Both the position numbers and the translations under genes were made by a program. Shown here piece after piece: positions 8,540 to 61,524 of a stretch of DNA of 64,000 bases. The stretch is from positions 124,001-188,000 of the forward strand of contig JAANOX010000237.1 in NCBI GenBank assembly GCA_020184695.1, in the 5' to 3' direction. The first letter of the stretch is position 1. Every line of letters begins with the position of its first letter. Under the pieces are notes generated by a model, which saw only the letters and a program-made list of their open reading frames with translations, did no database searches and was not told where the DNA came from. The DNA comes from Histomonas meleagridis 2922-C6/04-290x. Taxonomy: Eukaryota; Protista; Parabasalia.

Positions 8540-9229
8540 CTAAATTTGATTGATAAATTTTTCTTCTTTAAAATCATCTTGTGTGAATGGATCTTCGTCC
8601 ATATTAGTTGTTGAAACATTATGAAATGTGTTTTGATTTTCAATGTTACTTTGTTCATTGTTTTCTTTCTCTTGTTCTTCACTTAAATGTTTTTTATGTT
8701 TGATCTTGATTAAAACAATAACAAGTAATGATATAATAATAATTGCAACTGCAGCAGCACAAATAGAAATTGTAATTACATTTGTATTTTTATTTGTATG
8801 AAATTCATTTGAGGATAAAATTGTCAAGAAATAAGAATAAAAACTATAATATGTCGAATAACCAATGATTGTATAATCATAATAAATGAATACTGTTTCA
8901 ATATATGTATGTGATGAGTTAATATATGAAAATGTATATGAATTTGTTTGTATATTATATAATGATATTGTTTGTGTGATAGAATATCAATCTGTTAAAG
9001 TGCTCATAAATGTTAATGAAGAATTTATTACAAATGTTTTCATAAAAGTATATGTATTAGAAAATGTAAATGTCATTAATAATTGACTTTCATTAGTTAA
9101 TCCTTTAACAATATGCAATGGTCCAAATGTTGAATTTGCATATGTTAATGGAGCAATTACAGTATTCGTTGAAACATTAAAAAATGAATAAATTTCAATC
9201 GTTGGTGATATTTCACTATAAATATTTAA
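8540..9229 (-). pseudogene. 3' fragment of a type I surface protein (Ser/Thr/Tyr-rich stalk, TM helix, acidic tail)
   Basis: A 230-codon frame with one in-frame TGA (8987-8989) and no credible start. Stalk, TM (ISICAAAVAIIIISLLVIVLI) and tail resemble the C-terminus of the LRR protein at 40436. Confidence 0.65.
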
Positions 9230-17890: not shown

Positions 17891-18760
17891 TTATAAATAA
17901 ATATTTCTTATATCTTCTCGTTCAAGAAGCATTTGAACTATTTTTGTATGACCATTTAATGATGGTAAAATAAGTGCTGTTTCAAATAATTTAAATAATT
18001 TCCAAATATTATTTTGAAATATGAAATTATAAAAAGAAATTTTAAATAAAACAAATAAATATTTTAAGCATTAACATCAAACCCTTCTTGTTCAAGAAGT
18101 AATTTAACTATTTCTGTATGACCATTCCAAGATGCTTCTATAAGTGCTGTATTAAATATTTTAAATAATTTCCAAATATTATTTTGAAAAATCAAATTAT
18201 TAAAATAAATTTTAATTAAAATAAATAAATATCTTTAGCATTAATATCAATTTTTTCTTGTTTAAGAAGTAATTTAACGATTTCTGTATATACATTTTTT
18301 GAAGCATTTGTAAGAACTACAAATATTTTGAAAAAAATTTTTAAAATTTTTATGAAACAATAAAACACTTTAATAAAAATCCAATCAAATAAACAAATAA
18401 TCTTGCTTAAATCGATAGATATATATCTATTGTTAATTAAATAGTTAGAAAGTTCTACATTTCCTGAAAAACCCGAAATTTTCAAAAAATCAATTGGAAT
18501 ATGATTATCGAAGCAATGATAATATTTTTATTCATCTCCATTCCTCTTTCAATCAAAAATGAAAGAATATCAAAATTACAACAAAAAATACATTTTTCTC
18601 CTAATTTTTCTAAATCATTAACCATTTCGATTTTATTCTTAGATAAATATTTAAAGATATTATTTCGATGAAATTCAATTGCAATTTCATATGTACTTTC
18701 GAATGATGAATGATTTTGTTCACACAAATGAATAATTTCTTCATTTCCATCTACATTTTT
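17891..18760 (-). pseudogene. Degenerate DUF3447-ankyrin paralogue (locus B)
   Basis: Fragments EEIIHLCEQNHSSFESTYEIAIEFHRNDIF and GNVELSNYL match the paralogues. Ankyrin unit at 18061-18150 has an in-frame TAA (NA*N). 5' half is missing. Confidence 0.8.
17981..18230 (-). other. Two arrays of 4 x (17-nt interruption + 1 codon) in locus B
   Basis: 18151-18230 retains K-D-G-N; 17981-18060 retains K-H-G-E. Each array is exactly 80 nt. Confidence 0.9.
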
Positions 18761-26070: not shown

Positions 26071-28069
26071 TTATAAAATATTTTTATCATTAATATCAAT
26101 TCCTTCTTGTTCAAGAAGTAATTCAACTATTTCTGTATGACCTTTTTCAGATGCACAAATAAGTGCTGTTTTAAATAATTTGAACAATTTCCAAATATTA
26201 TTTTGAAACAAAAAATTATTAAAAAAAAATTTTTAAATAAAACAAATGAATATCTTTAGCATTAATATCAATTCCTTCTTGTTCAAGAAGTAATTCAACT
26301 ATTTCTGTATGACCATTTAAAGATGCATTAATAAGTGCTGTATTAAATAATTTGAATAATTTCCAAATATTATTTTGAAACAAAAAATTATTAAAATAAA
26401 TTTCATTTTTAGCATTAATATCAATTCCTTCTTTTTCAAGAAGTAATTTAACTATTTCTGTATGACAATTTAAAGATGCATTAATAAGTGCTGTTTCAAA
26501 TAATTTAAATAATTTCCAAATATTATTTAAAAATCCAAAATTATTAAAATAAATATTAAATAAAACAAATGAATATCTTTAGCATTAATATCAATTCCTT
26601 CTTTTTCAAGAAGTAATTTAACTATTTCTTTATGACAACTTAAAGATGCATTAATAAGTGCTGTTTCAAATAATTTAAATAATTTCCAAATATTATTTTG
26701 AAATATAAAATTATTAAAATAAATTCTAAATAAAACAAATAAATATTTTTAGCATTAATATCAATTCCTTTTTGTTCAAGAAGTAATTTAACTATTTCTG
26801 TATAACCATTATTAGATGCTTTCATAAGTGCTGTTTCAAATATTTTAAATAATTTCCAAATAGTATTTTGAAATATCAAATTATTAAAATAAATATTAAA
26901 TAAAACAAATGAATATCTTTAGCATTAATATCAATTCCTTTTTGTTTTAAAACGTATTCAACAAGTTCAATATTTCTTGATCCAGATGAAAATACCAAAA
27001 TATTATTCGGTATTGAATGATCTTTAAGTAAATATTCAACTGAAAAAATATTTCCAATCGTTGCTGCTTCGTTAATAATATCATCATTGATTTTCATTCC
27101 TTCTTTAACTAAAAATGAAAATATTTCATAGTTATGATATGAAATACAAAGCTTTCCTAATTTTTCTAAATTATAAATTTTTTTTAATTTATTCTCATAA
27201 GTATATTTAAAGATATCATTTCGATGGAATTGAATTGCTATTTCATATGCATCTTCAAATGATGAATGATTTTGTTCACATAAATGAATAATTTCTTCAT
27301 TTCCACCTGCAATTGCATATTTTCCTGTATTTTCTACTTTTGCATTGTTCAAGAGTAAATATTTGAAGCATTTAATAGATCCAAAGAATGCTGAATAATC
27401 AATTAATGAAACATTATCTTCATTAATGAATGGACATATTTCATAGAGTGATGGTTCTATATATTGATCAAAATCAAAATTTGTTTGTGATGATATTTCT
27501 TGAAGTTTTTCTGTTTCATCATTTCGAATTATTTTCGCAATTTCATTTGGATTATGTCCTTCTCTAATTAATTTCTGATGTAATTCCCAATCATTCTTTG
27601 AAAGCTCTTCATAATTTGGTAAGGCACTTACATATTCCCTTAAATGAATTGCTAATTCTTCTTTAGACATATAATGTGCAAAATAAGCACTCTGGTTGTT
27701 TTTTACAATGTTCGGTTCAAGAAAATTATGTTCAATCATAGCTTCAAGAAGATAATATGATTCATGTGTATGCTCATTATTAAGAAATTGACCAAATATA
27801 TCAAATATATTGGATTTGATTTTATTACTCTCTTCAAATGTTCTTATTTCTTTTATAATATTCAAAAATAAATCTATATTATTATTTTTAATTACAAAGG
27901 AATAATATATCATTTGAATAATAATTAAATCATAAGATAAAGGATGGATTTCATCAAATTTATTGATTATTAAACCTAAAGATCTAGAGAAATTTTCTTC
28001 ATTCAAACCAAAAATTGCTTGATTTATTGATAGAAGTGTTTCCCAGTCGCAACCTTCCTTTGGCCTCAT
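26071..28069 (-). CDS. DUF3447-ankyrin repeat protein (locus A), interrupted by 19 short non-GT/AG segments
   Basis: ORF 26876-28069 encodes a DUF3447-like region and ends just after GIDINAKD. Five more 90-nt ankyrin units follow (26745-26834, 26575-26664, 26405-26494, 26252-26341, 26080-26169). The 3' end at 26071 is uncertain. Confidence 0.8.
26170..26914 (-). other. Five arrays of 17-nt interruptions with single-codon spacers (locus A)
   Basis: 26835-26914 (4 elements; NDGE), 26665-26744 (4; RYGE), 26495-26574 (4; NWGE), 26342-26404 (3; EFGN), 26170-26251 (4, one 19 nt in homopolymer runs; KFGK). Confidence 0.92.
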
Positions 28070-45324: not shown

Positions 45325-46050
45325 ATGAATCTTGATTCTACAATCTGTTCTATAGCTGCTTTAAAGCAACGAATAGAAGAACTTGAAAGCGAAAAATTAG
45401 AATTGGATAATGAGTTAACTGAATATCAAAGTCAAATCCTTGAACTCAAAAAAGATGTCCTGAATCAAGAAATATTATCAAAAGCGACAAAGAATGCACT
45501 TAACATGATAAAGGAATCAAAAGCAATTCGCTCCCAAATTGAAGCTGAAAGGGAACTTAATGCACAATTGAAAAATGAATTAAAAACCGCAGAAGAAACT
45601 TTGTATAAACTTAAAAACAACCCAGTCACAGTTGAAAAAGATGATAAAGACGCTTTACGTGTAATTCAAAACATCAATGAATATCAAAAATTAACAGCGC
45701 AGATACTCAAAGATTATTTTCCGTCCACATTTTTCAAATCAACTTTAACACCAAATGAGAATACAAGTCGATATGATATTGATTTACTTCCAACTGATCA
45801 ACGAAAAATTGTAAAACGTCTTCGTGAACTCCCTTCGAATTACCCTCAACAAAGCAATCAAGTCAAACATGCGATTCTACAAGGAATGGTGTTTACTCTT
45901 CAAATAGCAGATGATTTAATTCAAAGTATATGCTCTCTTAAGAGCCAACAGTCCTACTCCATGACACCTGCGTCTATAGAAACCCAGATCATACCTTTAA
46001 CATATCAACTTAAAGTAATTTTTAACGAATTGAAACGTTTTTCTTTCTGA
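45325..46050 (+). CDS. Coiled-coil hypothetical protein
   Basis: 241-aa ORF with a heptad-rich N-terminal half. Confidence 0.7.
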   Translation: MNLDSTICSIAALKQRIEELESEKLELDNELTEYQSQILELKKDVLNQEILSKATKNALNMIKESKAIRSQIEAERELNAQLKNELKTAEETLYKLKNNPVTVEKDDKDALRVIQNINEYQKLTAQILKDYFPSTFFKSTLTPNENTSRYDIDLLPTDQRKIVKRLRELPSNYPQQSNQVKHAILQGMVFTLQIADDLIQSICSLKSQQSYSMTPASIETQIIPLTYQLKVIFNELKRFSF

Positions 46051-46259
46051 GACGGGTTCCAAGAATCTCTAAATTGTGTTTAAATAAAGTAAAAAGCGTA
46101 TTTTTTGTTCTAATTATGGTTTTATGCATAGCAAAAGTTTGTTACGGATTTTGTTTCTGAAATAACAGTTAACTGCTTTTTTAGTTTCAAAAATTTTGTT
46201 TGTTTCAGAATTTTCAACAAGACATTTTAATTTGAATCAAAGTATTTTGACATTGGAAC

Positions 46260-47144
46260 ATGGAAGAATCGTCAGATGACATAGAAGACTATATTGATTA
46301 TCAAGTTGAATGGGAGGACAGAAGTAATTGTGCTTGCAACATAGCATATTTTCCAGTTGGTGGGTTTTACATTATAAATCATTGGCGTAAAAAATTTTTG
46401 CGTCCAATTCTTTCAAACATAGCTTTTATCATTATATTTGCAGACTTAGTATTTGATCTTTATTATTCACTTAATTTTAAAGAGTATATAATTTCGCTAG
46501 TGTTTTGTTCACTTGCATTTTTAGCGACAGCTGTTTCATATTGGCTAATTATTGTTATAGGTCCGGGATATGTACCATATAACTGGAAGTTAACACATAA
46601 AAAGCGATTTACATGGAAAGAAAGGATGAATTATATCACAATATACGACCAACAAGTTCAATGTGCCAGAATGTCCGAAAGGCCAGCAAGGTCATCTTTT
46701 TCCTTGGATGCAAGAAGGTTTGTTCTTCGAGCAGATCATCTATGCATTTGGACAAATTCATGGATCGGATTTAAAAACCATCGTTACTTCATTTTATTTA
46801 CACTCTGGTTTGTTATTTATAGCTGTCTTTGGTTTGCTTGCAGATATAACTGGTATCTTTTAATTCCACAACTTCATTGGTATTATCTTATATCAGCTGC
46901 TTGTGCAATCGTTCTTATAACAGCTGCTAGTTATTCATTTTATTACTTGGTTAAGTCGTTGATAAATCTAAAAAATAACATCACGGGAATCGAAAAGTAC
47001 AATCGAAGGAACGTTAAAATGTACGATAAAGGCTGTATGAACAACTTTGAAGAAATCTTTGGAACAAGGAAGTGCATCATATGCTGGTGTAACCCTTTTT
47101 GTCCAGTTCCACGTGTCCATGATGGTTTTTATAATTCATATTAA
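46260..47144 (+). CDS. DHHC-family palmitoyltransferase, variant DHLC motif
   Basis: Four TM segments, GPGYVP, RADHLCIWTNSWIGFKNHRYF, ITGIE (TTxE-like), C-terminal YDKGCMNNFEEIFG. Confidence 0.88.
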   Translation: MEESSDDIEDYIDYQVEWEDRSNCACNIAYFPVGGFYIINHWRKKFLRPILSNIAFIIIFADLVFDLYYSLNFKEYIISLVFCSLAFLATAVSYWLIIVIGPGYVPYNWKLTHKKRFTWKERMNYITIYDQQVQCARMSERPARSSFSLDARRFVLRADHLCIWTNSWIGFKNHRYFILFTLWFVIYSCLWFACRYNWYLLIPQLHWYYLISAACAIVLITAASYSFYYLVKSLINLKNNITGIEKYNRRNVKMYDKGCMNNFEEIFGTRKCIICWCNPFCPVPRVHDGFYNSY

Positions 47145-47673
47145 ATTTTGTTAATGTTTTTTATTTGTTTCTAATTTTTGAGGGAACTGTGTTCGAATTT
47201 AAAGACAAGGTCTAAGTGAAGTGAAAAACTGACACTATAAACATAAATTTTCAGCATCTGTTCCATACAATTCTAAAAAAAATATAAACATAATAATATA
47301 CATTGTAGGTTAATCTTAAATATTATGTATCATGAAAATATATCAATTTTTTGAAAAAATATTTCATCATTATTTTTTTCACATTAATAATTAATTAAAG
47401 AAATAAAATGAATCATTAATTTTCAATAACGGAAATGGAATTAATTATCGAGACATTGCTAAAATAAAGAAATTCAGAAAAATATTATGAAAATTATTTG
47501 GTATATATCACAAGATTGGGCGTTAATTTAAAATATATATATATAGATCTATATTTAAAGATTCTCTCACATCATAACAAGAAACAATATGAATATAAAA
47601 TGCTTTAATTTAATATTTTTTCATAAATACTTTCACTTAATCAATAAATTTTACTTATTCATTAAAAGCAAAC

Positions 47674-50600
47674 TTACAAAAATCTTGCTCCAAAAAGAAA
47701 TGCTGGATTTGCTTCAGCAAATTTCGGTTTCGGTGCACCCCAACCACCAAATACTTGATGTGCTTGTTTTGTTTCTGATGCCAAAAGTTTTTCATCGTAT
47801 ATAATATCATTTTGCTTCTTAAGTAATTCCACAATATTTTTACAATTTTCATTACCTCCTTGATTTGAGTTTGCGAGCATAATTGCTGATTCACCGTTAT
47901 TATTTACTTCATTTATTTTTATATCTTTTTGTTGAAGAAGTAATTCTACGATTTCAAAACAACCATTTTGCGCAGCGCCCATTAAAGAATTCATAAATAA
48001 TTTTCATAAATTCCGAAGTTTTTATATAAATTTTAAAAAATTATAATAATTATTATTCTTATGATTTATATCGATTTCTTTATGATCGAGTAATAATTTA
48101 ACGATTTCCAAATGATTATTAAAACATGCTAACATAAAAGCAGTACCAAAATAATTAATTAAATTCCAAATTTTATCTATAAATTCCATTTTTTATTAAT
48201 AAACATATAATACTTATAATAAATACCATGAATGTCCAGATCAATTCCTTCATGTTCAAGTAATAGTTTAACTATATCTGTTCTTCCTTCTGAACAAGCA
48301 GTCATTAATGGTGTAAAATATATATATATTTAATTCCAAATATTGTTTTGATATAGAAATATTTTGAATCAATAATATAATGAAATAAATAAACAGATTT
48401 CACATTAACATTAACATCTTTTTTATCAAGAATTAACTTAAAGATTTCGAATTGATTCTTTTTAACTTCTTCAAAATTTGCTTTATTGTTAACAAATCAA
48501 TAAAATAAATCTTAACACGTGTAAATAAATTTGGCTTATTATTATCATTTCCTTGAGAATATTTCATATCGAAATGACATTGATCAGTTTTAGATGCACA
48601 ATGAGAATTCATAAAAATTATAAATAAATCAATTAACAAATAAAAAAACTCTAAATTATCAAAATTAATTCTAAACTCACAAAATGAACTTCGAAAAATT
48701 AAAGTAAACCAATTTGTTTTGATTTGGATTATAAAATGTATTATTATGTTTGTATAAAGACATTTTATGAAGTACAGTTTCAAATGATTGAATGAAATTC
48801 CAAATATTATTTCGAAATATTAAAAAGGCGGAACAAATCGTATTCAGAAGATTAACATCAATTCCTTTATGATCAAGAAGTAATTTAACAATTTCAACAA
48901 AACCTGCAATCGTTGCATACATTAAAGGTGAACCGAATGAATTAAATATATTTCACGAAATTTATCAATGAAATATTAAACTTAAGAAATGAATATCAAC
49001 AAAATTAACATCAATTTCTTTATGTTCAAGTAATAATTTAACAATATCAATGTAGTTATTACGTACAGCAAAAGTTAAAGCTGTTTCAAATAAATTAAAT
49101 TGTTTCCAAATAAAATTTAAAAACATAAAATTAATAAAATAAATTTTAAAACATATTATTAAATAGTTTTAGCATTAATATCAATATCTTTTTGTTCAAG
49201 AAGTAATTTAACAATATCAACACTGCCTTTCCATGTTGCAAAAATAAATGGGGTTTCAAAAAATGGAAACAATTTTTAAAAATATTTTAATATTATATTT
49301 ATTACATTTGTTAATATCAATTCCCTCAACATTAAGAAGAAGTTTCACAAGATCAACATTACCACTATTACATGCATAAAACAATGGCGTTAAAAAAACA
49401 ATAGACAAATTCCAAAGTTTGGAGTAAAACATTGAATTTATAAAACAAATATCGAACAAAAAAATGAAACATTTGCAATATTTATATCAATACCTTTACA
49501 TTCAAGAAGTAATTTGCATATTTTTATATAATTATTTTCAAATGCAAATGTTAATGCAGTTTTTCCTCTAGTATTTTGTTGTGAAATATCAATTCCTTTA
49601 TGTTGAAGAAGTAATTTAACTATTTTTGTATGACCATTTGAAGATGCTAAAATTAGCGCTGTATAAAATATTTGAAATAATTTCCAAATATTATTTTGAA
49701 ATATCAAATTATTATAATATATATTATTTTTAGCATTAACATCAATTCCTTCTTGTTCAAGAAGTAATTTAACTATATCTGTATTACCTTTATAAGATGC
49801 AAACATAATTGCTGTTTTAAATATTTTTAATAAATTCCAATAATTATTTTAAAATATTAAAATATTCAAATAAATAATATCTTTAGCATTAATATCAATT
49901 CCCTTTTGCTCAAGAAGCATTTTCACGTTTTCAATGTTATTTAAAGCACAAGCACAAAATAAAGGGGTTTTATAAAAGCACAAGAAACTCTACTAAATAT
50001 TCTCAACAAACATTAAAAAAACAAAAACAAATATCATAAATATTAACATTAATAGCTTTCCTCGATAAAACATATTTCACAAGTTCACTATTATTTGAAG
50101 AAACAGCATAAGCTATTGCATTATTTGGTAATGCTTTTCCTTCATAAAGATATCTTACAATGAATAAGTTACCACTTGCAAAAACTTCTTCAACGAATTG
50201 AGCATCATAAATATTAATTCCTTCATTTTCGATGAACAAAAAGATATCAAAGTTATCATATTGTATACATTTCGAACCCATATAATTTATTATTTTTATT
50301 TTCTTTTCTTCTTCACTTTCATTATTTCTCATTTGGTTCTGAGAAAATGTTATTGGATTTTGGAAGTTAAAATAACGCAGACATTTTCTTATAAACATAG
50401 TTCTTTCCTGATTATAATCGCATTTGAATAATTTATTTTCATATAGATAATAAAAGATATCATTTCGATGGAACTTAATTGCTGCTTTATAAGCGTTTCC
50501 AAATGTTACACCATTTTGTTCACATAAATGAATGATTTCAATGTTTCCACCTGCTACTGCATATTTACCAACATTTTCAATATAAGCACCATTAACTAAC

Positions 50601-51370
50601 AAATATTTAAAACATTTAATCGACCCATAAAATGCTGCATATTGGATTAATGTAACAGGATGTTCATCACAACTAAAACATTTGGTGAATTTCTCATAAA
50701 TTGATACTGGTAATGGCTCATCAATATCAATTTTATTGTTTGATATTATTTCTTGAAGTTGTTCAGCATCATCATTACGTATAGCTTTTGTGACTTCAGA
50801 AGGATTTCCTTCGTTCATGTTCTTTTTATGTTCTTCAAAATTACTTCCTTTTTGTTGACGAATGATTTCAATAGCTTTCTGTTCCCCAAAGGAGGGTTGT
50901 GCTTTTTGAGCTTGATTTTCAATTGATGAAATTTGTTCTTTTGTTAATAAATGAACAAAGTATATCTTGTTTTCTGGGTGATCAATAAATTGATCAGGTC
51001 TTATTAAATTATTTTCAACTAATTTAACTAATATAAAATTGGACTCTCTAATACCCACTGAAAGTAAATAACTTTTAAATAGTGAAAATATTTGTGGACT
51101 TTCTTTGAGAATTTCTTCTTCCTTTTTTTCAATAAATTGTAAATATTGTATATAGATATTTATATCTTTACGCTGTGATAGATATGATGAATAAATATTT
51201 CTTATTAGAACCAGATTAAATGAAATTGGAAAATTAGTATCAAATAAATCCATGGTTAATTGAACAGTCAATTCAATGTTTTCTTGATTTAAATCAAAAA
51301 GTAAATTACTAATATCTTGAAGATATTTGATTTCTTCTTTGGGATTTCTTGTTGTCATTTTGTTGTCCAT
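47674..51370 (-). CDS. DUF3447-ankyrin repeat protein (locus C), one gene interrupted by 42 short segments; 993 aa after removal
   Basis: 3697 nt minus 41x17 and 1x18 nt leaves 2982 nt = 994 codons, with no internal stop in my manual translation. This joins ORFs 50003-51370, 49438-49806, 49256-49459, 48677-48922, 48433-48783 and 47674-47994. Confidence 0.85.
47992..50032 (-). other. Twelve arrays plus one singleton of 17-nt interruptions (locus C)
   Basis: 49969-50032 (NSRK), 49816-49878 (INGK), 49663-49725 (NDGY), 49391-49470 (DNGL), 49255-49300 (KYKE), 49085-49164 (KYGE), 48932-48994 (NREG), 48779-48841 (TNGE), 48613-48709 (5 elements), 48494-48510 (single), 48315-48394 (YSGF), 48145-48224 (YGGG), 47992-48054 (NKGM). 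Confidence 0.9.
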
Positions 51371-51649
51371 TGCCTGAAAAAAACGTTAAAAAAGTGCCTT
51401 GGCATGGATTGCATAGCTTCTATCAGAGTAGTGTAAACGAAATTAATTCATATTTTTCTCTGAATGGAAATTAATAAATTCATTTTAGATATATAAAATA
51501 TCTCTTTATATATGTAGAGATTAATATTATCATTATCTAATATTGCAATGCCTTAATTAATATTTCGGAAATGAGGGAAAATCAATTCATTATGAAATTT
51601 TCTCAAATGAATATAGTTTCTCATGAAAATATCATTTTCAATTTGAATT

Positions 51650-52490
51650 TTGAAAATATTAAAAAAATCAACAAAATCAATTGATGAATTTGATAAAAAA
51701 TATGATTGGGAATTTCATAAACAATTAATTAAAAAAGGAGTAAATCCTAATGAAATTACAATAATAATTCGAAATTATGAAATAGAAAAACTTCAAGAAA
51801 TATCATCACAAAATGATTTTAAATTTTTGGATCAATTATATGTTTTAGATATTTAATTATGAATGGTGTTAAAGTCGGCAAATATTCATTTGCAGGTGGA
51901 AATGAAGTAATAATTCATTTATGTGAAAATAATAATGGATCATTTTATGAAGCAGCAATTGAATTTCATTGAAATGATATCTTTAAACACCTTTATGAAA
52001 ATAAAATTGTTAAAACGATAAATTTAGATTACTTATATAAGTAATGTATTGTCAATAATTCATTTAATTGTGTAGGAAGGATTGAATTTAGATTCTTTCA
52101 TATATGAATTATCATTGACTGGAATTTATATCTAATAAAATGTTTTCTTGAAAAATATAAACTACTAAATGATATTTATTTCATGAGCAAGTCCAGGAAA
52201 TATTGAACTTGTTGAATATTTTCTTAAATTTGAACAAACTGATATCAATGTTAGAAAAGTTTCTATAAAAAATTGGGAATTTGTTGATATGTCATTATAT
52301 TTAATATGAGTATTTGGCTATTTTTTATGTTTTTTGATATTTATTTGAAAAATTTTATACCCTTATATAATATTTGGAAATAATTTATATTATTTAATAC
52401 ATCAGTTATTAAAGCATTTAAAAATGCTCAAATAGAAATAGTTAAATTGCTTCTTGAACAAAAAGGAATTAATGTTAGCTGGAGGGTCAA
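51650..52490 (+). pseudogene. Degenerate DUF3447-ankyrin paralogue (locus E)
   Basis: WEFHKQLIKKGVNPNEI, GGNEVIIHLCE, AAIEFH*NDIF and GNIELVEYFL fragments with stops and frameshifts; one ankyrin unit starts at 52399. Confidence 0.8.
52259..52398 (+). other. Array of 7 x (17-nt interruption + 1 codon)
   Basis: 140 nt = 7 x 20. Retained codons GGA TAT GGC GAT TAT GGA AAT precede ACA (Thr). Confidence 0.85.
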
Positions 52491-52918
52491 AAAACCAACA
52501 TTTGTATAAATTTTAAAAATGCGATAAAATAGATATCATTGAGATCAGTAAATTTTTCAGAGGTACTAAAACTCAAAATCATGCAATATTTTTTCAACGA
52601 TAATTATATGTTAATAATGGCATCGGTAGGAGATTACAAAAATATTTTTGTTATGAAATTTTGACTGTTAAATCTTTCCAAATTCGATATGATTTCGACC
52701 ATACTTTTTTGGGAATTTTGTGATATTTCCTATATAGTAATATTGTATGTTAGATATGTTTATTTTCTAAATAATTATCTTGTATTATTTTTATTAAAAT
52801 TTAGAAAGTGTGGAACTCAATTTAAAAAAAAAAATTAATTGAAAAATTGTTATTCGAAAACTTAACTTTGGTTTATATGATGAGATAAAAAGATTTTATA
52901 TTTGTTGACTATAAGTTT

Positions 52919-54915
52919 TTACTGTTTATTGTTTTTTTCTTTATCATTGAATAATTTAACTATTTCTTCGTAACCTTTAATTGTTGCAATCATGAGTGGA
53001 GTTAATAATAATTTGCATGAATATCAAATATCAGTTTGAAACATAAAATTGATTAAATTAACACTAAATATAATAAATTGATAGTATAAGTATGAATTAC
53101 TATTCCCTCTTGTTCAAGTAATAGTTTAACAATTTCAGTTTTTCCACATTCACATGCAACTAAAAGAGCTGTTTGAAGAAAAATGAATAAAATCCAAATA
53201 TCATTTTGAAAAGTCATTTTTTACAATTAAATATTATATACTTTAAATATATATCTTTAGCATTAATATCAATTCCTTTTTGTTTAAGGAGCAATTTTAT
53301 AATGTCAATATGACCATATCTAGTTGCCAGCATTAAAGCTGTCCATAATAATTTATAAAAATTCCAAAACTTATTTTTAAGCATTAAATTATTCTATTAA
53401 ATATTGAACAAAATTTTAAAATATCTTTGTTATTAATATCAATGTCCTTTTGCTCAAGAAGTAATTTGACAACATCAGTACATCCATTAAGTGATGCATT
53501 CATTAAAGCTGTTTTAAATTCTTTGAATAATTTCCATTAACAATTTTAAAATATAAAGTTATTAAAATATATTTTGTTCAAAACGAATAAACATCGCTAA
53601 TATTTATATCAATTCCTTCTTGTTCAAGAAGCAATTTTACAATTTCTATATGACCATTTTTTGTAGCAATTATAAGTGCAGTTTGAAATAATATAAAGAA
53701 TTTCCAAATATTACTTAAAAACTTCACATGAGTAAAATTAAAACTTTTTTCATTTATATTAATACACTTTAGATCGATGACATATTTAACGAGTTCAACA
53801 TTTCCTGACAATGAAGAAAAAATTAAAATATCTTTCGGAACAGGTTTCTTATTAAGGAAATATTTAACAAGAAATATATTTCCAATATTAGCTGCTAAAT
53901 TAATAAATGATTCTTCAATATCCATACCTTCTTTTTCCAAAAAATAAAGAATTTGATAATTGTTACATTTAATACAAATTTTTCCCAGTTTGTTTATATT
54001 GTCAATTTTAGACATTTTATTCTCGTAAAGATAATGAAAGATATCATTTCGATGAAACAAAATTGCAGTTTCAATAGTTCCTTCGAAAGATAAATGATAT
54101 TGTTCACAAAGATGAAACATTTCTATGTTACCACCTGCAACAGCAAATATTCCTGAATTATAACTTGCTCCGTTTAGTAACAAAAATTTAAAACATTTAA
54201 TTGATCCAAAAAATGCTGCATAATCAATTAACGAAACTTTTTCTTGATTAATAAATGAACATCTTTCATAAATTGAAGGACAAATTATTTGATTAAAATT
54301 AAAATCATTTTGTGATGATATTTCTTGAAGTTTTTCTATTTCGTCATTTCGAATTATTTTTGCTATTTCATTCGGATTAACTCCTTCTTTAATTAATTGC
54401 TTATGAAGTTCCCAATTATTCTTTGATAGTTCTTTTATATTATCAAAGAAATCTCTACTATGGTAGTATCTAGCTAATCGAAAATCTTCAAATTCTTCAT
54501 TACTTAGAAAATGTGAAAAATAAAAAGATTTATGTTTTTTGCTTTTTATAACTTGAGATGTGATTAATTTATATTCATACAACTTTTCAAGAAGAAAATT
54601 AGATTCTTGAGAATCAGAGCAAAGAAGAATTGTTGTAAATATATGAATTAGCTTGAAATCATTTTTATTGATTTTTTCTTTTTCTTCAATTTCCTGGAGA
54701 AAATGAATACAAATATCGAATTCATTCACGTTTGAACTAAAGCTTAAAAGAAATAATTGACTTAGAACAGTATTGAATGAATATACTAAATTATCATCAA
54801 ATAAATTCATAATCGATTCAATTGATGAATTAAAATTATCTTTATTTAAGCCAAAAACAATTTGTTCCATCAGTAGTAAGATATCATCAGTGATATTTTG
54901 AAATGACGCCTTCAT
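52919..54915 (-). CDS. DUF3447-ankyrin repeat protein (locus D), interrupted by 19 short segments; 557 aa after removal
   Basis: 1997 nt minus 19x17 = 1674 nt = 558 codons. Ankyrin units at 53593-53682, 53423-53512, 53253-53342, 53083-53172, then a terminal unit ending at TAA 52919-52921. Confidence 0.85.
53003..53742 (-). other. Five arrays of 17-nt interruptions (locus D)
   Basis: 53683-53742 (60 nt, 3 elements, EGQ), 53513-53592 (KYGK), 53343-53422 (NNGW), 53173-53252 (NDGQ), 53003-53082 (SYDL). Confidence 0.9.
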
Positions 54916-55965: not shown

Positions 55966-58900
55966 TTGAGCGGCTTTGGTTTGCAACTTTATATTAAGAG
56001 TGCATGCAAGGAAATTTGTTTGGAAACAATTTATATTTTTGCCACTTTTTGTCCAATAAGAAAAAATAAGCGCAAAAAACAACAAATGATTACTTCATCA
56101 ACTAAATTCGATATTACTAAATACATGCATTCAGGTGCATCACAAGATGGAACACTATGTGCTAGTATGGTTGTTTTTTCGCAACTAAATCCAAGAGTAA
56201 ATCAATACCAACAAATCGGACAATTACCTCTTGTAATTAGTCGGAAATCCGCAAACTTAATGATTCTTGTCCTTGGTCCACAGAAGAAAATTCTGACCTA
56301 TGTACAAGTAACACAATCAATTAATTGGATTATTCAATCAAGTGTTTATTGCACATTTATTGATCAAAATAATGTCAGGTGTTTGGCTAGATTTAATACT
56401 GCTGAGGATGCTCAGTTTTTCACAATGATTGCTCTTTCCAAAAAAATCAACATCGGAATTAACAGTTATTGTATTGATCAAGGAAAAAACGATTTACAAA
56501 TTTGTAGTGATAATGAAAATATTTTAGTAAAAGTTAGAGTTTATGATCTAACATTACAAGCAGTTCATGAGGCAATCGACAAAATTGATAACTGTTATAT
56601 TGAAGATTCTATAACATTTCCCAATACAAAAATGAATGGGGTCTATGTAGCCCAAATTTCTCAGTCAATATTTGCTATAATGGAAATAGTTGGAAAGCAA
56701 ATGAAGGAAAAAAAGAAAAGCGGACTCTTTGGCTTCTTCGGTGTTGAAGAAGAAAATGATAATAGCGAAAGTGAAAGTGATTTATTCGGCTTTAATAGAA
56801 AAGAAAGAAATTCATCAGAAAATAGTTCAGAAGAAGAGGAAAATAACTTATTTGGATTTCATAAAAAAGTATCCAGAAAAATAGAGGAAGAAGAGGAAGA
56901 AGAAAATAGTGAAAGCGAAAGTAGTTTTAGAGGTAAACAGAAAAGAGTATATAGAAAAATAGAGGAAGAAGAAGAAAATAGTGAAAGCGAAAGTAGTTTA
57001 AGAGGTAAACAGAAAAGAGTATATCAAAGAATGGAAGAAGAGGAAGAAGAAGAAAACAGCCAAAGCGAAAACAATTTAAGAAGTAATCAGAAAAGAGTAT
57101 ATAGAAAAATAGAGGAAGAAGAGGAAGAAGAAGAAAATCTTGAAGAGGAAAATGAAAGAAGTAAAGAAGAAAATATGGAGGAAATCGAAGAGGAAAATGA
57201 GAATAAAGAGGAAGAAAATGAAGACGAAAATGATGATAAAGAAGATGATATTGAAGAAGATAAAGGTGAACATAGTGATGTTATAGAACATCAAGACAAC
57301 GAAGAAGAAATTGAAGACAAAAAAGAAGAAAATAAAGAAATAGAAAAAGAGAAAGAAGAAACTTCAGAAGAAGATAAAGAAGAAGTTGAAGAAGAATATA
57401 TGGAAGATAAAAATGAAATAAAAGAAAAAGAAACCAAAGAAGAAATTATCGAAGAAACGGAAGAGGAAGAAGTTAAAGAAGAAGAAAAGGAAGGTAAAAA
57501 AGATAAAGAAGAAGACAAAGAAGAAATTAAGGAAGAAATCCTAGAAAGAGTTAAAAAAGAGGAAGTTAAGAAAGATGAAAAAGAAAATATAAAAGAAGAA
57601 ACACAAGAAGAGGAAGATAAAGAAGAAACTAAAGAAAAAATTAAAGAAGATAAAGAAGGGGATGTTAAAGAGGAAGAAACTCAAGAAGAAGAAATTAAGG
57701 AAGATAAAGATGAATCTTCAAAAGTAGAAACTGAGGGAAATGAAGAAGAAATCAAAGAACATAAAGAAAGAAATCCAGAAGAAGTTAAAGAGGAAGAAAT
57801 TAAAGATAAAGAAGAAATATCAGAGGGTGAAATTAAAGAAGATAAAGAAAGAACTACAGAAGAAGAAATTGAAGAAGAAGAAACTAAAGAAGAGGAAACT
57901 AAAGAAAATAACAAAAAAATTAAAGAAAAAACTATAGAAGAAGTTAATGAAGATAAAAAAGAAAATAAAGAAGGAACACCAGAAAAAATTGAAGAAGAAG
58001 TTAAAGAAGAGGAAACTAAAGAAGATAAAGAAGAAACTAAAGAAGAAGTTAAAGAAGAAGAAGAAATTAAAGAAGAGGAAACTATCGAAGACAAAAAAGA
58101 AGAAACTAAAGAAGGAACACCAGAAGAAGTTGAAGAAGAAGTTAAAGAAGAGGAAACTAAAGAAGATAAAGAAGAAACTAAAGAAGAAGTTAAAGAAGAA
58201 GAAGAAACTAAAGAAGAAGTTAAAGAAGAAGAAGAAATTAAAGAAGAGGAAACTAAAGAAAGAACACCAGAAGAAGTGAAAGAAGAAGAGGAAACTAAAG
58301 AAGTTAAAGAAGAAGTTAAAGAAGAAGAAGAAACTAAAGAAGATAAAGAAGAAGTCAAAGAAGAAGAAATTAGAGAAGAGGAAACTAAAGAAGATGAAGA
58401 AGAAACTAACGAAGAAATTAAAGAAGAAGAAGAAACTAAAGAAGATAAAGAAGAAGAAGAAACTAAAGAAGAGGTTAAAGAAGAAGAAAAAGAAGAAACT
58501 AAAGAAGAATTTAAAGAAGAAGAAGAAATTAAAGAAGATAAAGAAGAGGTTAAAGAAGAAGAAACTAAAGAAGAAGTTAAAGAAGAAGAAGAAACTAAAG
58601 AAGATAAAGAAGAAGAAGAAATTAAAGAAGAGGAAACTAAAGAAAGAACACCAGAAGAAGTGAAAGAAGAAGAGGAAACTAAAGAAGATAAAGAAAATGA
58701 AATTGAAGAAGAAGAAATTAAAGAAGATAAAGAAGAGGTTAAAGAAGAAGAAACTAAAGAAGAAGTTAAAGAAGAAGAAGAAACTAAAGAAGTTAAAGAA
58801 GAAGAAGAAATTAAAGAAGAGGAAACTAAAGAAAGAACACCAGAAGAAGTGAAAGAAGAAGAGGAAACTAAAGAAGTTAAAGAAGAAGTTAAAGAAGAAG

Positions 58901-61524
58901 AAGAAATTAAAGAAGATAAAGAAGAAGTCAAAGAAGAAGAAATTAGAGAAGAGGAAACTAAAGAAGATGAAGAAGAAACTAAAGAAGAAGTTAAAGAAGA
59001 AGAAGAAATTAAAGAAGAGGAAACTAAAGAAAGAACACCAGAAGAAGTGAAAGAAGAAGAGGAAACTAAAGAAGATAAAGAAGAAGTCAAAGAAGAAGAA
59101 ATTAGAGAAAAGGAAACTAAAGAAGAGGTTAAAGAAGAAGAAGTTAAAGAAGAAGAAGAAACTAAAGAAGAATTTAAAGAAGAAGAAGAAGTTAAAGAAG
59201 AAGATAAAGAAGAGGAAACTAAAGAAAGAACACCAGAAGAAGTGAAAGAAGAAGAAGAAATTAAAGAAGAAACTAAAGAAAAAGCACAAAAAGAAGTGAA
59301 AGAAGAAGAAACTAAAGAAAAAACACCAGAAGAAATGAAAGAAGAAGAAGAAATTAAAGAAGATGAAACCAAAGAAAATAAAGAAAGAACGCCAGAAAAA
59401 GAAGAAGAAGTCAAAGAAGAAATTAAAGAAAATAAAGAAAAAGAAATTAAAGAAGAAGAAATTGAAGAAGAAGATAAAGAAGAGGAAACTAAAGAAAGAA
59501 CACCAGAAGAAGAAACTCGGGAAGAAATTATCAAAGAAGAGGAAACTGGAGAAAAGGAAGTTAAAGAAGATAAAGAAGCAAGAAAAGAAGAAGAAAATAA
59601 GGAAGAGGAAAATAAAGAAGAAATTAAAGAAAATAAAGAAAGAACACAAGAAGAAGTTGAAGAAGAAGAAACTAAAGAAGAAAGTAAAAATAAAGAAGAT
59701 GAAGTCAAGGAAGATAGAGAAGAAGAAAGAACTCCAGAAGAAGATGAAGAAGTTAAGGAAAATATAAAAGAAGAAGAAACTCTAGAAGAAAATAAAAATA
59801 AACAAGAAGAAATAAAAGAAAACGAAATTAAAAATAAATCTGATGAAGAAGAAGAAAAATCACCACCAAAAGAAAGTTCTGATGAAAAAACCAAAGATCA
59901 ATCAGAATCGTCTAAAGAAAACTCCGAAGCCGAAGCAAAAGGTAAATCTGAGCGGTCTAAAGAAAACTCCGAAGCCAATGAAGATAAATCTGAATCATCT
60001 AAAGAAAGTTCTGATGAAGAAACCAAAGATCAATCAGAATCGTCTAAAGAAAACTCCGAAGCCGAAGCAAAAGGTAAATCTGAATCGTCTAAAGAAAGTT
60101 CTGATGAAGAAACCAAAGATCAATCAGAATCGTCTAAAGAAAACTCCGAAGCCAATAAAGATAAATCTGAATCATCTAAAGAAAGTTCTGATGAAGAAAC
60201 CAAATACAAATCAGAATCGTCTAAAGAAAACTCCGAAGCCGAAGCAAAAGGTAAATCTGAATCATCCAACGGAAGTTCTGATGATAAATTCATCCAAATT
60301 CTGAGTGATGATGAAATTGGCACAAAAAAAACAACAAAACGTCGGAAGCCCGCTCCAAAGCATGACGACACCTCCGATGACTTCAGCGATCTCTTTGCCA
60401 AGCCAAAGAAGAAGAAGCAGCGAATATCACTTTTCGACGCAGATTTGACAGATTCGTCAACAGATGCATTTGATTTTGACTTCACCAAACCTGCTAAGAC
60501 TAAGTCTAAGAAACGTATCACGTTATTTGATGATATAATACCCTCGACAAAGCCCAAAAAGTCCAAAAAGAAATCGAAATCAAAATCCCGAAAGTCACTT
60601 TTTGATAGTATTGACGATAGCGCACCACCAGTCAAATCCACTGAATTACCTAAAGAAGAATTGAAAGCCGAAATCGGTTCTTCCGTAGAAAAAGTTCATA
60701 AGGATCTTGGCACTTTTGCCTATGTTGATAAAGCACAAAAGTTTACATCTGCTTCTGAACTTAGGCAATCAATGCGCTCACGATTTGCGCAACTTGAATC
60801 CCTTATCAAGTCCATTACTATTCAAGAGTGTAAAACTACACAACTTGATTTACCAAATATTGTACTCAAAGAAAGTATTCATAAATTAGTAAATGACATT
60901 AAATCCAAAGATGCGCGACTTAAACAAATGCAAATTCTTATCGATTTCCTTGACGAAACTACAACATCGACATTTGAAAAAGATGAAATTCTAAAAGAGC
61001 AGAAAAAGCGTCGAATGGAAATCAAAACAGAAGAAACGCGAACAGAATCCGCAATTTCGGAACTTGTCGAAGTGCAAAAAGTTGTAAATTCGCTCGAGCA
61101 AGAACTTTCTGATATTTCCATATCATTGCAACAATCGGAGAATGAACTTCGCGCGAAACACGAAGCGGAAATGTACCGAGAAGCGTCTGAAAGCATCGAA
61201 GAGCAAAAGCCGATCGAGCAGAAAATGATCGAAGCGAAGAATCGGAAAGTTAACATCGAAATAAAACTGATGCCATTACTTGACGAAAACAAGAAAATGA
61301 AAGAAAACGTCGACACGAAATCGCTTAAAGAAATTGAAGAACTGAAAAGTAACGCACCGAAAATGCTGAAGGAAGTCGTGCTCGAGATGAAGGAGGGACT
61401 GGAGGCGATGCTGGAAAGCGCGTTCAACCCATTGAGGGAATACGACGGAGATATGGTGGCAACGGCGGTGAAAAACGCGTTGAAGAAACAAGGAATGTTA
61501 TGTATGCAAAAGAGGAAAGTGTAA
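55966..61524 (+). CDS. Giant Glu/Lys-rich repeat protein with FKBP15-like N-terminal PH/WH1-type domain and C-terminal coiled coil
   Basis: 1852-aa ORF. N-terminal YCTFIDQNNVRCLARFNTAEDAQFF resembles FKBP15 YSTFYDDQRQNWSIMFESEKAAVEF (from memory). About 1000 aa of E/K repeats. True start probably MITSS. Confidence 0.8.
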   Translation: MSGFGLQLYIKSACKEICLETIYIFATFCPIRKNKRKKQQMITSSTKFDITKYMHSGASQDGTLCASMVVFSQLNPRVNQYQQIGQLPLVISRKSANLMILVLGPQKKILTYVQVTQSINWIIQSSVYCTFIDQNNVRCLARFNTAEDAQFFTMIALSKKINIGINSYCIDQGKNDLQICSDNENILVKVRVYDLTLQAVHEAIDKIDNCYIEDSITFPNTKMNGVYVAQISQSIFAIMEIVGKQMKEKKKSGLFGFFGVEEENDNSESESDLFGFNRKERNSSENSSEEEENNLFGFHKKVSRKIEEEEEEENSESESSFRGKQKRVYRKIEEEEENSESESSLRGKQKRVYQRMEEEEEEENSQSENNLRSNQKRVYRKIEEEEEEEENLEEENERSKEENMEEIEEENENKEEENEDENDDKEDDIEEDKGEHSDVIEHQDNEEEIEDKKEENKEIEKEKEETSEEDKEEVEEEYMEDKNEIKEKETKEEIIEETEEEEVKEEEKEGKKDKEEDKEEIKEEILERVKKEEVKKDEKENIKEETQEEEDKEETKEKIKEDKEGDVKEEETQEEEIKEDKDESSKVETEGNEEEIKEHKERNPEEVKEEEIKDKEEISEGEIKEDKERTTEEEIEEEETKEEETKENNKKIKEKTIEEVNEDKKENKEGTPEKIEEEVKEEETKEDKEETKEEVKEEEEIKEEETIEDKKEETKEGTPEEVEEEVKEEETKEDKEETKEEVKEEEETKEEVKEEEEIKEEETKERTPEEVKEEEETKEVKEEVKEEEETKEDKEEVKEEEIREEETKEDEEETNEEIKEEEETKEDKEEEETKEEVKEEEKEETKEEFKEEEEIKEDKEEVKEEETKEEVKEEEETKEDKEEEEIKEEETKERTPEEVKEEEETKEDKENEIEEEEIKEDKEEVKEEETKEEVKEEEETKEVKEEEEIKEEETKERTPEEVKEEEETKEVKEEVKEEEEIKEDKEEVKEEEIREEETKEDEEETKEEVKEEEEIKEEETKERTPEEVKEEEETKEDKEEVKEEEIREKETKEEVKEEEVKEEEETKEEFKEEEEVKEEDKEEETKERTPEEVKEEEEIKEETKEKAQKEVKEEETKEKTPEEMKEEEEIKEDETKENKERTPEKEEEVKEEIKENKEKEIKEEEIEEEDKEEETKERTPEEETREEIIKEEETGEKEVKEDKEARKEEENKEEENKEEIKENKERTQEEVEEEETKEESKNKEDEVKEDREEERTPEEDEEVKENIKEEETLEENKNKQEEIKENEIKNKSDEEEEKSPPKESSDEKTKDQSESSKENSEAEAKGKSERSKENSEANEDKSESSKESSDEETKDQSESSKENSEAEAKGKSESSKESSDEETKDQSESSKENSEANKDKSESSKESSDEETKYKSESSKENSEAEAKGKSESSNGSSDDKFIQILSDDEIGTKKTTKRRKPAPKHDDTSDDFSDLFAKPKKKKQRISLFDADLTDSSTDAFDFDFTKPAKTKSKKRITLFDDIIPSTKPKKSKKKSKSKSRKSLFDSIDDSAPPVKSTELPKEELKAEIGSSVEKVHKDLGTFAYVDKAQKFTSASELRQSMRSRFAQLESLIKSITIQECKTTQLDLPNIVLKESIHKLVNDIKSKDARLKQMQILIDFLDETTTSTFEKDEILKEQKKRRMEIKTEETRTESAISELVEVQKVVNSLEQELSDISISLQQSENELRAKHEAEMYREASESIEEQKPIEQKMIEAKNRKVNIEIKLMPLLDENKKMKENVDTKSLKEIEELKSNAPKMLKEVVLEMKEGLEAMLESAFNPLREYDGDMVATAVKNALKKQGMLCMQKRKV
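56875..59870 (+). repeat. Purine-rich coding repeat tract (GAA/AAA-based EEETKEEVK and ERTPEE modules)
   Basis: Shuffled modules such as GAAGAAGAAACTAAAGAAGAAGTTAAA and GAAAGAACACCAGAAGAAGTGAAA; plus strand overwhelmingly A/G. Confidence 0.95.
59872..60270 (+). repeat. Nine-unit 45/45/42-nt coding minisatellite (order A B C A B A C A B)
   Basis: A=ESSDEETKDQSESSK, B=ENSEAEAKGKSESSK, C=ENSEANEDKSESSK; 7x45 + 2x42 = 399 nt. Confidence 0.9.

Follow-up and report, generated by a model that had tools for sequence, protein, structure and literature searches.

Seventeen-nucleotide elements interrupting an ankyrin-repeat gene of Histomonas meleagridis and their probable removal from RNA

Six elements in an ankyrin-repeat gene

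The window analysed here, by which we mean the whole stretch of 64,000 nucleotides (nt) taken from contig JAANOX010000237.1 of the Histomonas meleagridis 2922-C6/04-290x assembly GCA_020184695.1 (positions 124,001 to 188,000, forward strand), is AT-rich eukaryotic DNA (GC 21-37%) with long intron-free open reading frames (ORFs). One gene on its minus strand, which we will call the host gene, opens with an unbroken DUF3447/ankyrin ORF of 455 codons (51370-50003). Downstream of this ORF, as far as the stop codon at 47674-47676, there are 34-residue ankyrin repeats broken by about 41 elements of 17 nt, and only short ORF fragments are visible. Our subject is six of these elements: five that form a tandem array (48613-48709) and one that stands alone, the singleton (48494-48510). 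We believe, with a probability of about 0.8, that each of the six units is an intervening sequence exactly 17 nt long, which is transcribed and then cut from the RNA, its flanks being joined.

All six units are 17 nt long and all start with a purine followed by T (R-T), three of them with AT and three with GT. Their 3' dinucleotides are, in order, TC, TT, TT, AA, TT and TT, and the 3' edges that are fixed by RNA read GATTT/G and TTTTT/A. The array is preceded by AAT CAA AAC AAA TTG (NQNKL) and followed by ATG AAT TCT CAT TGT (MNSHCASK); the singleton stands between ACA CGT GTT AAG (TRVK) and GTT AAC AAT AAA (VNNKANF). Table 1 gives the coordinates. The singleton is identical at 16 of 17 positions to a loop element at 49144-49128, and a near-direct repeat is found at its flanks (48488-48516: GTTAAG, element, GTTAAC). 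Together these two features may point, weakly and from a single case, to the copying of units or to insertion accompanied by target duplication.

Table 1. Host gene, 17-nt elements and the exon pieces around them (window positions; elements are given in the direction of reading)
Feature	Position	Strand	Basis and remarks
Host gene	47674-51370	minus	Pfam DUF3447 (1.6e-10) and Ank families; parses; RNA contigs in three runs
Exon piece ETVLHKMSLYKHNNTFYNPNQNKL	48710-48781	minus	Helix 1 of degenerate repeat and start of insertion
Array element 1 GTTTACTTTAATTTTTC	48709-48693	minus	Minus-strand reading; edge ambiguous by 1 nt since G also follows
Predicted single-codon exon GAA (E)	48690-48692	minus	20-nt register; analogy with arrays in which the letters left in RNA add up
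Array element 2 GTTCATTTTGTGAGTTT	48689-48673	minus	Minus-strand reading, parse, array words
Predicted single-codon exon AGA (R)	48670-48672	minus	As for GAA codon
Array element 3 ATTAATTTTGATAATTT	48669-48653	minus	Minus-strand reading, parse, array words
Predicted single-codon exon AGA (R)	48650-48652	minus	As for GAA codon
Array element 4 GTTTTTTTATTTGTTAA	48649-48633	minus	Minus-strand reading, parse, array words; 3' end AA, not TTY
Predicted single-codon exon TTG (L)	48630-48632	minus	As for GAA codon
Array element 5 ATTTATTTATAATTTTT	48629-48613	minus	3' edge fixed by RNA contigs of runs X3, X4 and X5
Exon piece MNSHCASKTDQCHFDMKYSQGNDNNKPNLFTRVK, 34 codons	48511-48612	minus	Lineage-specific insertion; covered by RNA contigs without mismatch
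Lone element ATTTATTTTATTGATTT	48510-48494	minus	5' AU, 3' UU; 17-letter loss in RNA contig of run X5
Exon piece VNNKANFEEVKKNQFEIFKLILDKKDVNVNVKS	48395-48493	minus	Helix 2 and loop start of degenerate repeat; BLASTP within gene

Where these units lie is of some importance. The initial annotation held that elements also occur outside the ankyrin loop, as an array of five and a lone unit, and reading of the minus strand confirms this together with the coordinates. Both the array and the singleton fall within an insertion of about 60 residues between helix 1 of a degenerate repeat (GETVLHKMSLYKHNN, upstream of the array) and its helix 2, and not in the hairpin loop that houses the other units. 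The same annotation took the piece that follows the singleton for the second half of an ankyrin repeat. This identification is upheld because BLASTP within the gene aligns the piece, KNQFEIFKLILDKKDVNVNVKS, to helix 2 and loop of a normal repeat, KGSVDIVKLLLEQKDIDINAKT, with 9/22 residues identical (41%), 17/22 positive and an E-value of 1e-6; Pfam on the piece is blank. The three short exon pieces around the elements have no Pfam match, and an exhaustive search among 1.84 billion representative proteins yielded no relative of the 34-residue piece (48511-48612).

The elements "outside the loop" are still inside a gene of the DUF3447 and ankyrin family. Among the non-ankyrin genes within the window no convincing 17-nt singleton was found in a set of eight candidates. 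Four are known elements of ankyrin loci and another, at 17902, adjoins an ankyrin locus. The candidate at 8832 lies where the frame is already open, so that it is a matter of chance. Those at 46783 and 57341, judged from the ORF list only, are inside an intact ORF and antisense to an intact ORF, respectively.

The elements in RNA and DNA runs

Public sequencing runs of the same organism comprise two DNA samples (study P1, 2021) and RNA samples of 2023 (study P2) and of 2013. Contigs from RNA runs X3, X4 and X5 and from DNA run X1 were aligned to positions 47600-53599; these are assembled contigs and not reads. The clearest result concerns the singleton. A contig of X5 (record 25) lacks exactly 17 letters at 48494, at a depth of 118.1/118.1, and the corresponding value for DNA run X1 is 0/1707.6. 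The bases that flank the deletion differ from the bases at its ends; hence the deletion cannot be slid along the sequence, and the removed segment is exactly the lone element, AU...UU. The earlier claim that a single element can act alone is thereby borne out, since the contig is without precisely 48494-48510 and the DNA run is never without it.

The singleton is kept in X3 (0/478.5; record 10, in a contig that is 17 nt longer) and in X4 (0/44). Its removal looks incomplete; dependence on the sample is less likely. If the singleton is retained, the frame meets a stop at 48433-48435, so that the X3 and X4 forms would encode a protein without the last repeats. Depth in the RNA runs is 0-9 between genes as against 100-900 in the gene, which means that the contigs retaining elements represent RNA rather than carried-over DNA. 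Sampled 31-mers of the host gene are recovered at 0.55-0.66 in the RNA runs and at 0.86-0.91 in the DNA runs; a value of 0.70 is expected in the absence of any element. A further contig of X3 (record 9) has 19 extra letters past 47637, which is 37 nt beyond the stop codon of the host gene, and this point may be a poly(A) site.

For the five-unit array, four sampled 31-mers of 48613-48709 give 1.00 in DNA runs X1 and X2 and 0.00 in RNA runs X3, X4, X5 and X9, and the exon flanking the array is assembled in X3-X5 at a depth of 44-478. RNA contigs of X3, X4 and X5 (records 10, 17 and 25) are colinear with the genome to exactly 48612 and then continue with 138 letters that are off the genome. The array is gone from the RNA, and its flanks are joined in one contig. 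The five-unit parse would put GAAAGAAGATTG between AAATTG and ATGAAT in the joined RNA.

Might the array instead leave the RNA as one piece of 97 nt (48613-48709), its 20-nt register being a remnant of the way in which the sequence originated? Removal of 97 nt restores the frame equally well, and all that is seen at this array is that it is missing and where its 3' edge lies; the contig tail of 138 letters does not discriminate. We nevertheless regard removal in one piece as improbable. All five units start with R-T in an exact register of 17+3, and two neighbouring arrays allow the letters left between the flanks to be counted. In X4 (record 23), 8 letters stand where the genome has 76 nt (53006-53081); this corresponds exactly to loss of four 17-nt units with AGT, TAT and GAT kept and one letter absorbed by the aligner, as checked by hand. 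In X5 (record 29), 4 letters take the place of 55 nt (52260-52314), exactly as if units 1-3 of a plus-strand array of seven units had gone and GGA and TAT had stayed. Letters that fit retained codons thus remain in both places and rule out one-piece removal there, and this favours the five-unit reading for 48613-48709 as well. By this analogy the array very probably leaves as five separate units of 17 nt.

Other contigs are in agreement. In the X4 RNA, 17 letters are missing at 53235, in the ankyrin locus that we call locus D, with a DNA value of 0/2605.4. Colinear RNA blocks stop at predicted element edges (48612, 49470, 52259, 53005/53082 and 53237), within the 1-2 nt by which a match may extend by chance.

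Several arrays are processed in part or in an irregular way. The array of seven units belongs to a third DUF3447/ankyrin copy (51570-52500, plus strand). This copy has an in-frame TGA at 51970-51972, where its paralogues have the R of FHRNDIF, as well as more frame breaks, and it looks like a pseudogene. Its transcripts are found at low depth, and one RNA contig has lost units 1-3 of the array (52259-52315) and kept units 4-7, of which unit 4 starts with TA and not with RT. In the four-unit loop of locus D at 53176-53252 (minus strand), the RNA contigs of X4 and X5 have lost unit 1 (53252-53236) but kept units 2-4, which leads to an in-frame stop; units 3 and 4 start with TT. In the same contig, processing of the loop that follows downstream (53082-53006) is complete. 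In the first loop of the host gene (49972-50035, minus strand), the contigs of the three RNA runs depart from the genome at 50032/50031, and the parse had put the first unit at 50011. The contigs can be fitted either by a unit with T as its first base (50031-50015) or by an 18-nt unit in a run of seven T that is followed by two units of 17 nt (D-N-SR-KTPL). Exceptions in length or in the 5' base may be involved, or an assembly error in a homopolymer.

What can be learned from the DNA alone is of a different value for different arguments. The initial annotation had expected a 17-nt parse to restore the frame better than random deletions do. On frame alone it does not: a 17-nt deletion opens the frame of the singleton at 81 positions (60 distinct mRNAs), and the frame of the array is opened by about 100 single deletions for every length of 3n+1. 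Repair is so easy at the array because two ORFs overlap by about 100 nt. For every skip length not divisible by 3, a parse of the whole gene takes about 20 skips. Restoration of the frame was therefore rejected as evidence, as it discriminated no length or placement of the elements. The deletion in the X5 RNA is the predicted one among the 81 frame-opening positions.

The proposed RTT...TTY rule (Y, pyrimidine) stands in part. All six units begin with RT, but the TTY end fails in the fourth, which ends in TAA. Intact ORFs contain the pattern RTT-N12-TT about 10 times per kb, with no difference between sense and antisense. The motif is neither sufficient nor fully necessary.

Spacing is more informative. 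Across four of the window's ankyrin loci the KLLL-coding anchors are 102 nt apart where a repeat is uninterrupted and 153 or 170 nt apart elsewhere, that is 102 + 3x17 or 102 + 4x17, and the unit length of 17 follows from this without recourse to RNA. When the units are taken out, the interrupted loops have the 34-residue length and the conserved G and T of the same gene's uninterrupted repeat (for example, AKNN-D-G-NTAL compared with QQNTRGKTAL). Parses of the host gene by position weight matrix (PWM) and dynamic programming give 38-41 elements and a product of about 999-1016 residues. They were seeded with the units of the initial annotation and hence are not independent of it. The six elements are unchanged at every setting, 34/38 elements are in phase 0 when all phases are allowed, and the consensus is RTTTATT...ATTT. 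Minus-strand ankyrin loci at 17984-18230 and 26498-26914 have the same arrays with an exact repeat spacing of 170 nt.

How the elements might be removed

The best reading of these observations is that the units are micro-introns with AU or GU at the 5' end, a U-rich body, no AG or any fixed dinucleotide at the 3' end and no parabasalid branch motif. In the broad sense they behave as introns do: they occur in the DNA and in part of the RNA and are missing from processed RNA, in which their flanks are contiguous within one molecule, and unprocessed and half-processed RNAs coexist with precisely processed ones. The units would work both alone (48510-48494) and in tandem, where one codon would be kept after each unit (48709-48613, yielding E-R-R-L). 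Arrays are probably processed unit by unit from the 5' side. The suggested order follows from two considerations: a 3-nt exon is hardly recognisable before it has been joined to the upstream exon, and in RNA the seven-unit array is without its units 1-3 only and the locus D loop 53252-53176 without its unit 1 only. Since the length is fixed while the 3' end varies, the position of the 3' cut may be set by its distance from the 5' R-U and not by a signal of its own. On its own the 17-mer cannot make up the whole signal, because look-alikes are frequent in ORFs, are not depleted in the sense direction and are not removed from the N-terminal ORF.

Several points weigh against our reading. The singleton is retained in two of the three RNA assemblies, and two other arrays have lost no more than their first units. 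The evidence from RNA consists of assembled contigs, and the E-R-R-L codons of the five-unit array are deduced and not read. The RNA runs come from another study than the DNA runs, and a 17-nt difference at the singleton in the DNA of sample S5 is conceivable. There are no recognisable splice signals; RTT...TT 17-mers are equally common on the antisense strand of intact ORFs, and the RNA contigs keep sequences of the N-terminal ORF that match the PWM at 6-8 bits.

What kind of activity could remove such units? Our guess, at about even odds, is that a spliceosome is used under a constraint on length, rather than a separate activity that cuts and ligates. It is also conceivable, if rather unlikely, that the units are non-spliceosomal and are removed by a length-measuring activity that recognises a 5' R-U in a U-rich context, cuts out exactly 17 nt, rejoins the ends and can repeat this along an array. 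The predicted RNA fold of 48730-48480 does not stand out from shuffled sequences (z = -0.74; 44/200 fold as well), although fold prediction is blind to sites that are defined by a protein or a guide. A search of the window against Rfam gave no match.

Could the difference between the runs lie in the DNA? Strain or allele polymorphism, a copy of the gene free of elements, or programmed excision from DNA would each account for an RNA contig that lacks an element. The separate origin of the RNA and DNA runs leaves room for this, as does the fact that a single RNA sample lacks the singleton. Nevertheless, the DNA contigs are never without the elements at either 48494 or 53235, both DNA samples keep all array words, and the array is missing in all three RNA samples. 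Moreover, retained elements and half-processed arrays are found at 100% identity within the same RNA runs, which means that the genome of those samples has the elements. We consider a difference at the DNA level very improbable.

The elements might also stay in the mature mRNA and be skipped by the ribosome. Their mostly phase 0 placement, their shortness, a length that is not a multiple of 3 and the existence of RNAs that retain them are what one would expect of translational bypass or frameshifting. RNA contigs with precise removal nevertheless exist, and for the arrays they dominate. With the elements removed in RNA, no bypass is needed. Moreover, bypass would take seven to twelve consecutive hops per pair of repeats, which is unprecedented. 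Such a mechanism is scarcely credible here. Finally, a decayed, frameshifted pseudogene in which the 17-nt parse is due to chance in AT-rich DNA would fit the ease of frame repair, the commonness of the motif, the lack of a public gene call at the locus and the pseudogene-like neighbouring copy, but it can practically be dismissed, as the predicted 17 nt are exactly those removed in RNA, anchor spacing is quantised by 17, the spliced loops match the uninterrupted repeat in length, G and T, and expression is well above the intergenic level.

Genomic setting and comparison with known systems

The host gene lies in a stretch (about 46050-54735; contig WSYJ01000171.1, assembly GCA_020186115.1) for which the public collection has no called gene, and this uncalled stretch takes in an intact DHHC palmitoyltransferase ORF (46260-47144) and all three ankyrin loci. 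A proteasome ATPase gene near the host gene is found letter for letter on the same public contig. The gene family that bears the elements seems to be absent from public annotation. A search of the public collection for contigs encoding the 455-residue ORF and its DHHC neighbour returned nothing on record, a search for homologous proteins gave none for a 116-residue ORF, and a scan of metagenome proteins found no relatives. A word scan of metagenome DNA gave only two unrelated contigs, one being an uninterrupted ankyrin gene of another organism and the other a chance match. Elsewhere in the window, the ORF at 55966-61524 (plus strand, 1852 residues) lies in a stretch of extreme strand asymmetry, with GC skew up to 0.59 and AT skew up to 0.71. 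It looks purine-rich, repetitive and coding, and the long antisense ORFs look like a by-product.

The evidence suggests a tiny intron of an undescribed kind, lacking GT-AG ends. The literature searched, which covered few subscription journals, holds no description of these 17-nt elements. In the H. meleagridis genome paper (WSYJ00000000) the genome has 43 Mb, a GC content of 28% and 573-638 annotated introns, with at most one per gene. Parabasalids are a textbook example of intron-poor eukaryotes, and here a single gene would have about 41 intervening sequences of fixed length without GT-AG ends, some of them one codon apart. If so, the gene catalogues available for this poultry pathogen lack a whole protein family or list its members in truncated form. 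The singleton is the cleanest case, with exact cut sites (AU...UU), no ambiguity of alignment, autonomy and no tie to the ankyrin hairpin; it would turn an odd feature of a repeat into a general processing signal. Minimal requirements for an intron would be challenged as well, with no AG, no branch motif and exons of 3 nt, and the elements would offer a natural system for the study of length-measured excision and stepwise processing. Should the removal turn out to be non-spliceosomal, nuclear mRNA would be processed here in a new way, and a genome regarded as poor in introns would conceal an unannotated gene family dense in introns.

We know of several systems with which the elements can be compared. 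The bypassed segments of T4 gene 60 and the byps of Magnusiomyces (yeast) mitochondria are short, frame-breaking inserts that stay in the mRNA while a normal protein is made. The Histomonas inserts are missing from RNA contigs. Internal eliminated sequences (IES) of ciliates are short AT-rich inserts in coding sequence, often numerous, which are precisely excised from DNA. IES leave the DNA, whereas the Histomonas elements are kept in the DNA runs (array words 1.00) and lost in RNA, of which unprocessed forms exist. Nonconventional introns of euglenids, which leave nuclear pre-mRNA by an unknown route, have borders other than GT-AG, variable length and ends brought together by base pairing. 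The Histomonas units share the lack of GT-AG ends and differ in their fixed length of 17 nt and in having no structure that stands out.

Spliceosomal introns offer further comparisons. The micro-exons of animals and plants (3 nt and up) have long canonical introns at their flanks and depend on enhancers. The predicted one-codon exons would be kept in a similar way, and the stepwise removal known from recursive splicing would explain half-processed arrays, but the flanks here are of 17 nt, with up to seven units in succession. Introns of the U12 AT-AC type start with ATATCC and end in AC; those of the units that start with AT have ATTTAT or ATTAAT there and TT at the other end. Trichomonas, which belongs to the same phylum as Histomonas, has about 63 introns genome-wide, with GT...AG ends and the branch motif (A/T)CTAAC at -8 to -12, never several per transcript, and its type B introns are 23-25 nt long and T-rich (PMC12316389). 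Type B introns are likewise short and T-rich. The six units, by comparison, have no AG end and no CTAA and are shorter than 23 nt, and the singleton, whose removal is seen in RNA, starts with AT and cannot be shifted.

Tiny introns of near-uniform length belong, with Trichomonas type B introns and the nonconventional introns of euglenids, to the closest known systems, each of which differs from the units in a defining feature. The units have a near-invariant length (losses in RNA are of 17, 17, 51 and 68 nt), and GT-AG ends are lacking. In Stentor coeruleus introns are 15-16 nt long, and in the Bigelowiella nucleomorph 18-21 nt. In Mikrocytos mackini they are 16-17 bp long and splicing is incomplete, 63% versus 37% (PMC10245619). 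Like the introns of all three organisms, the Histomonas elements are very short, AT-rich, nearly fixed in length and removed from RNA, and incomplete removal is shared with Mikrocytos. Introns in these organisms have GT-AG ends and conserved internal motifs and stand singly between normal exons, whereas the Histomonas elements run from AU or GU to U, A, C or G, have no AG, number dozens per gene and occur in tandem with 3-nt exons. A length of 17 nt is within the range that the spliceosomes of Stentor and Mikrocytos handle; the ends of the Histomonas elements are neither GT-AG nor AT-AC.

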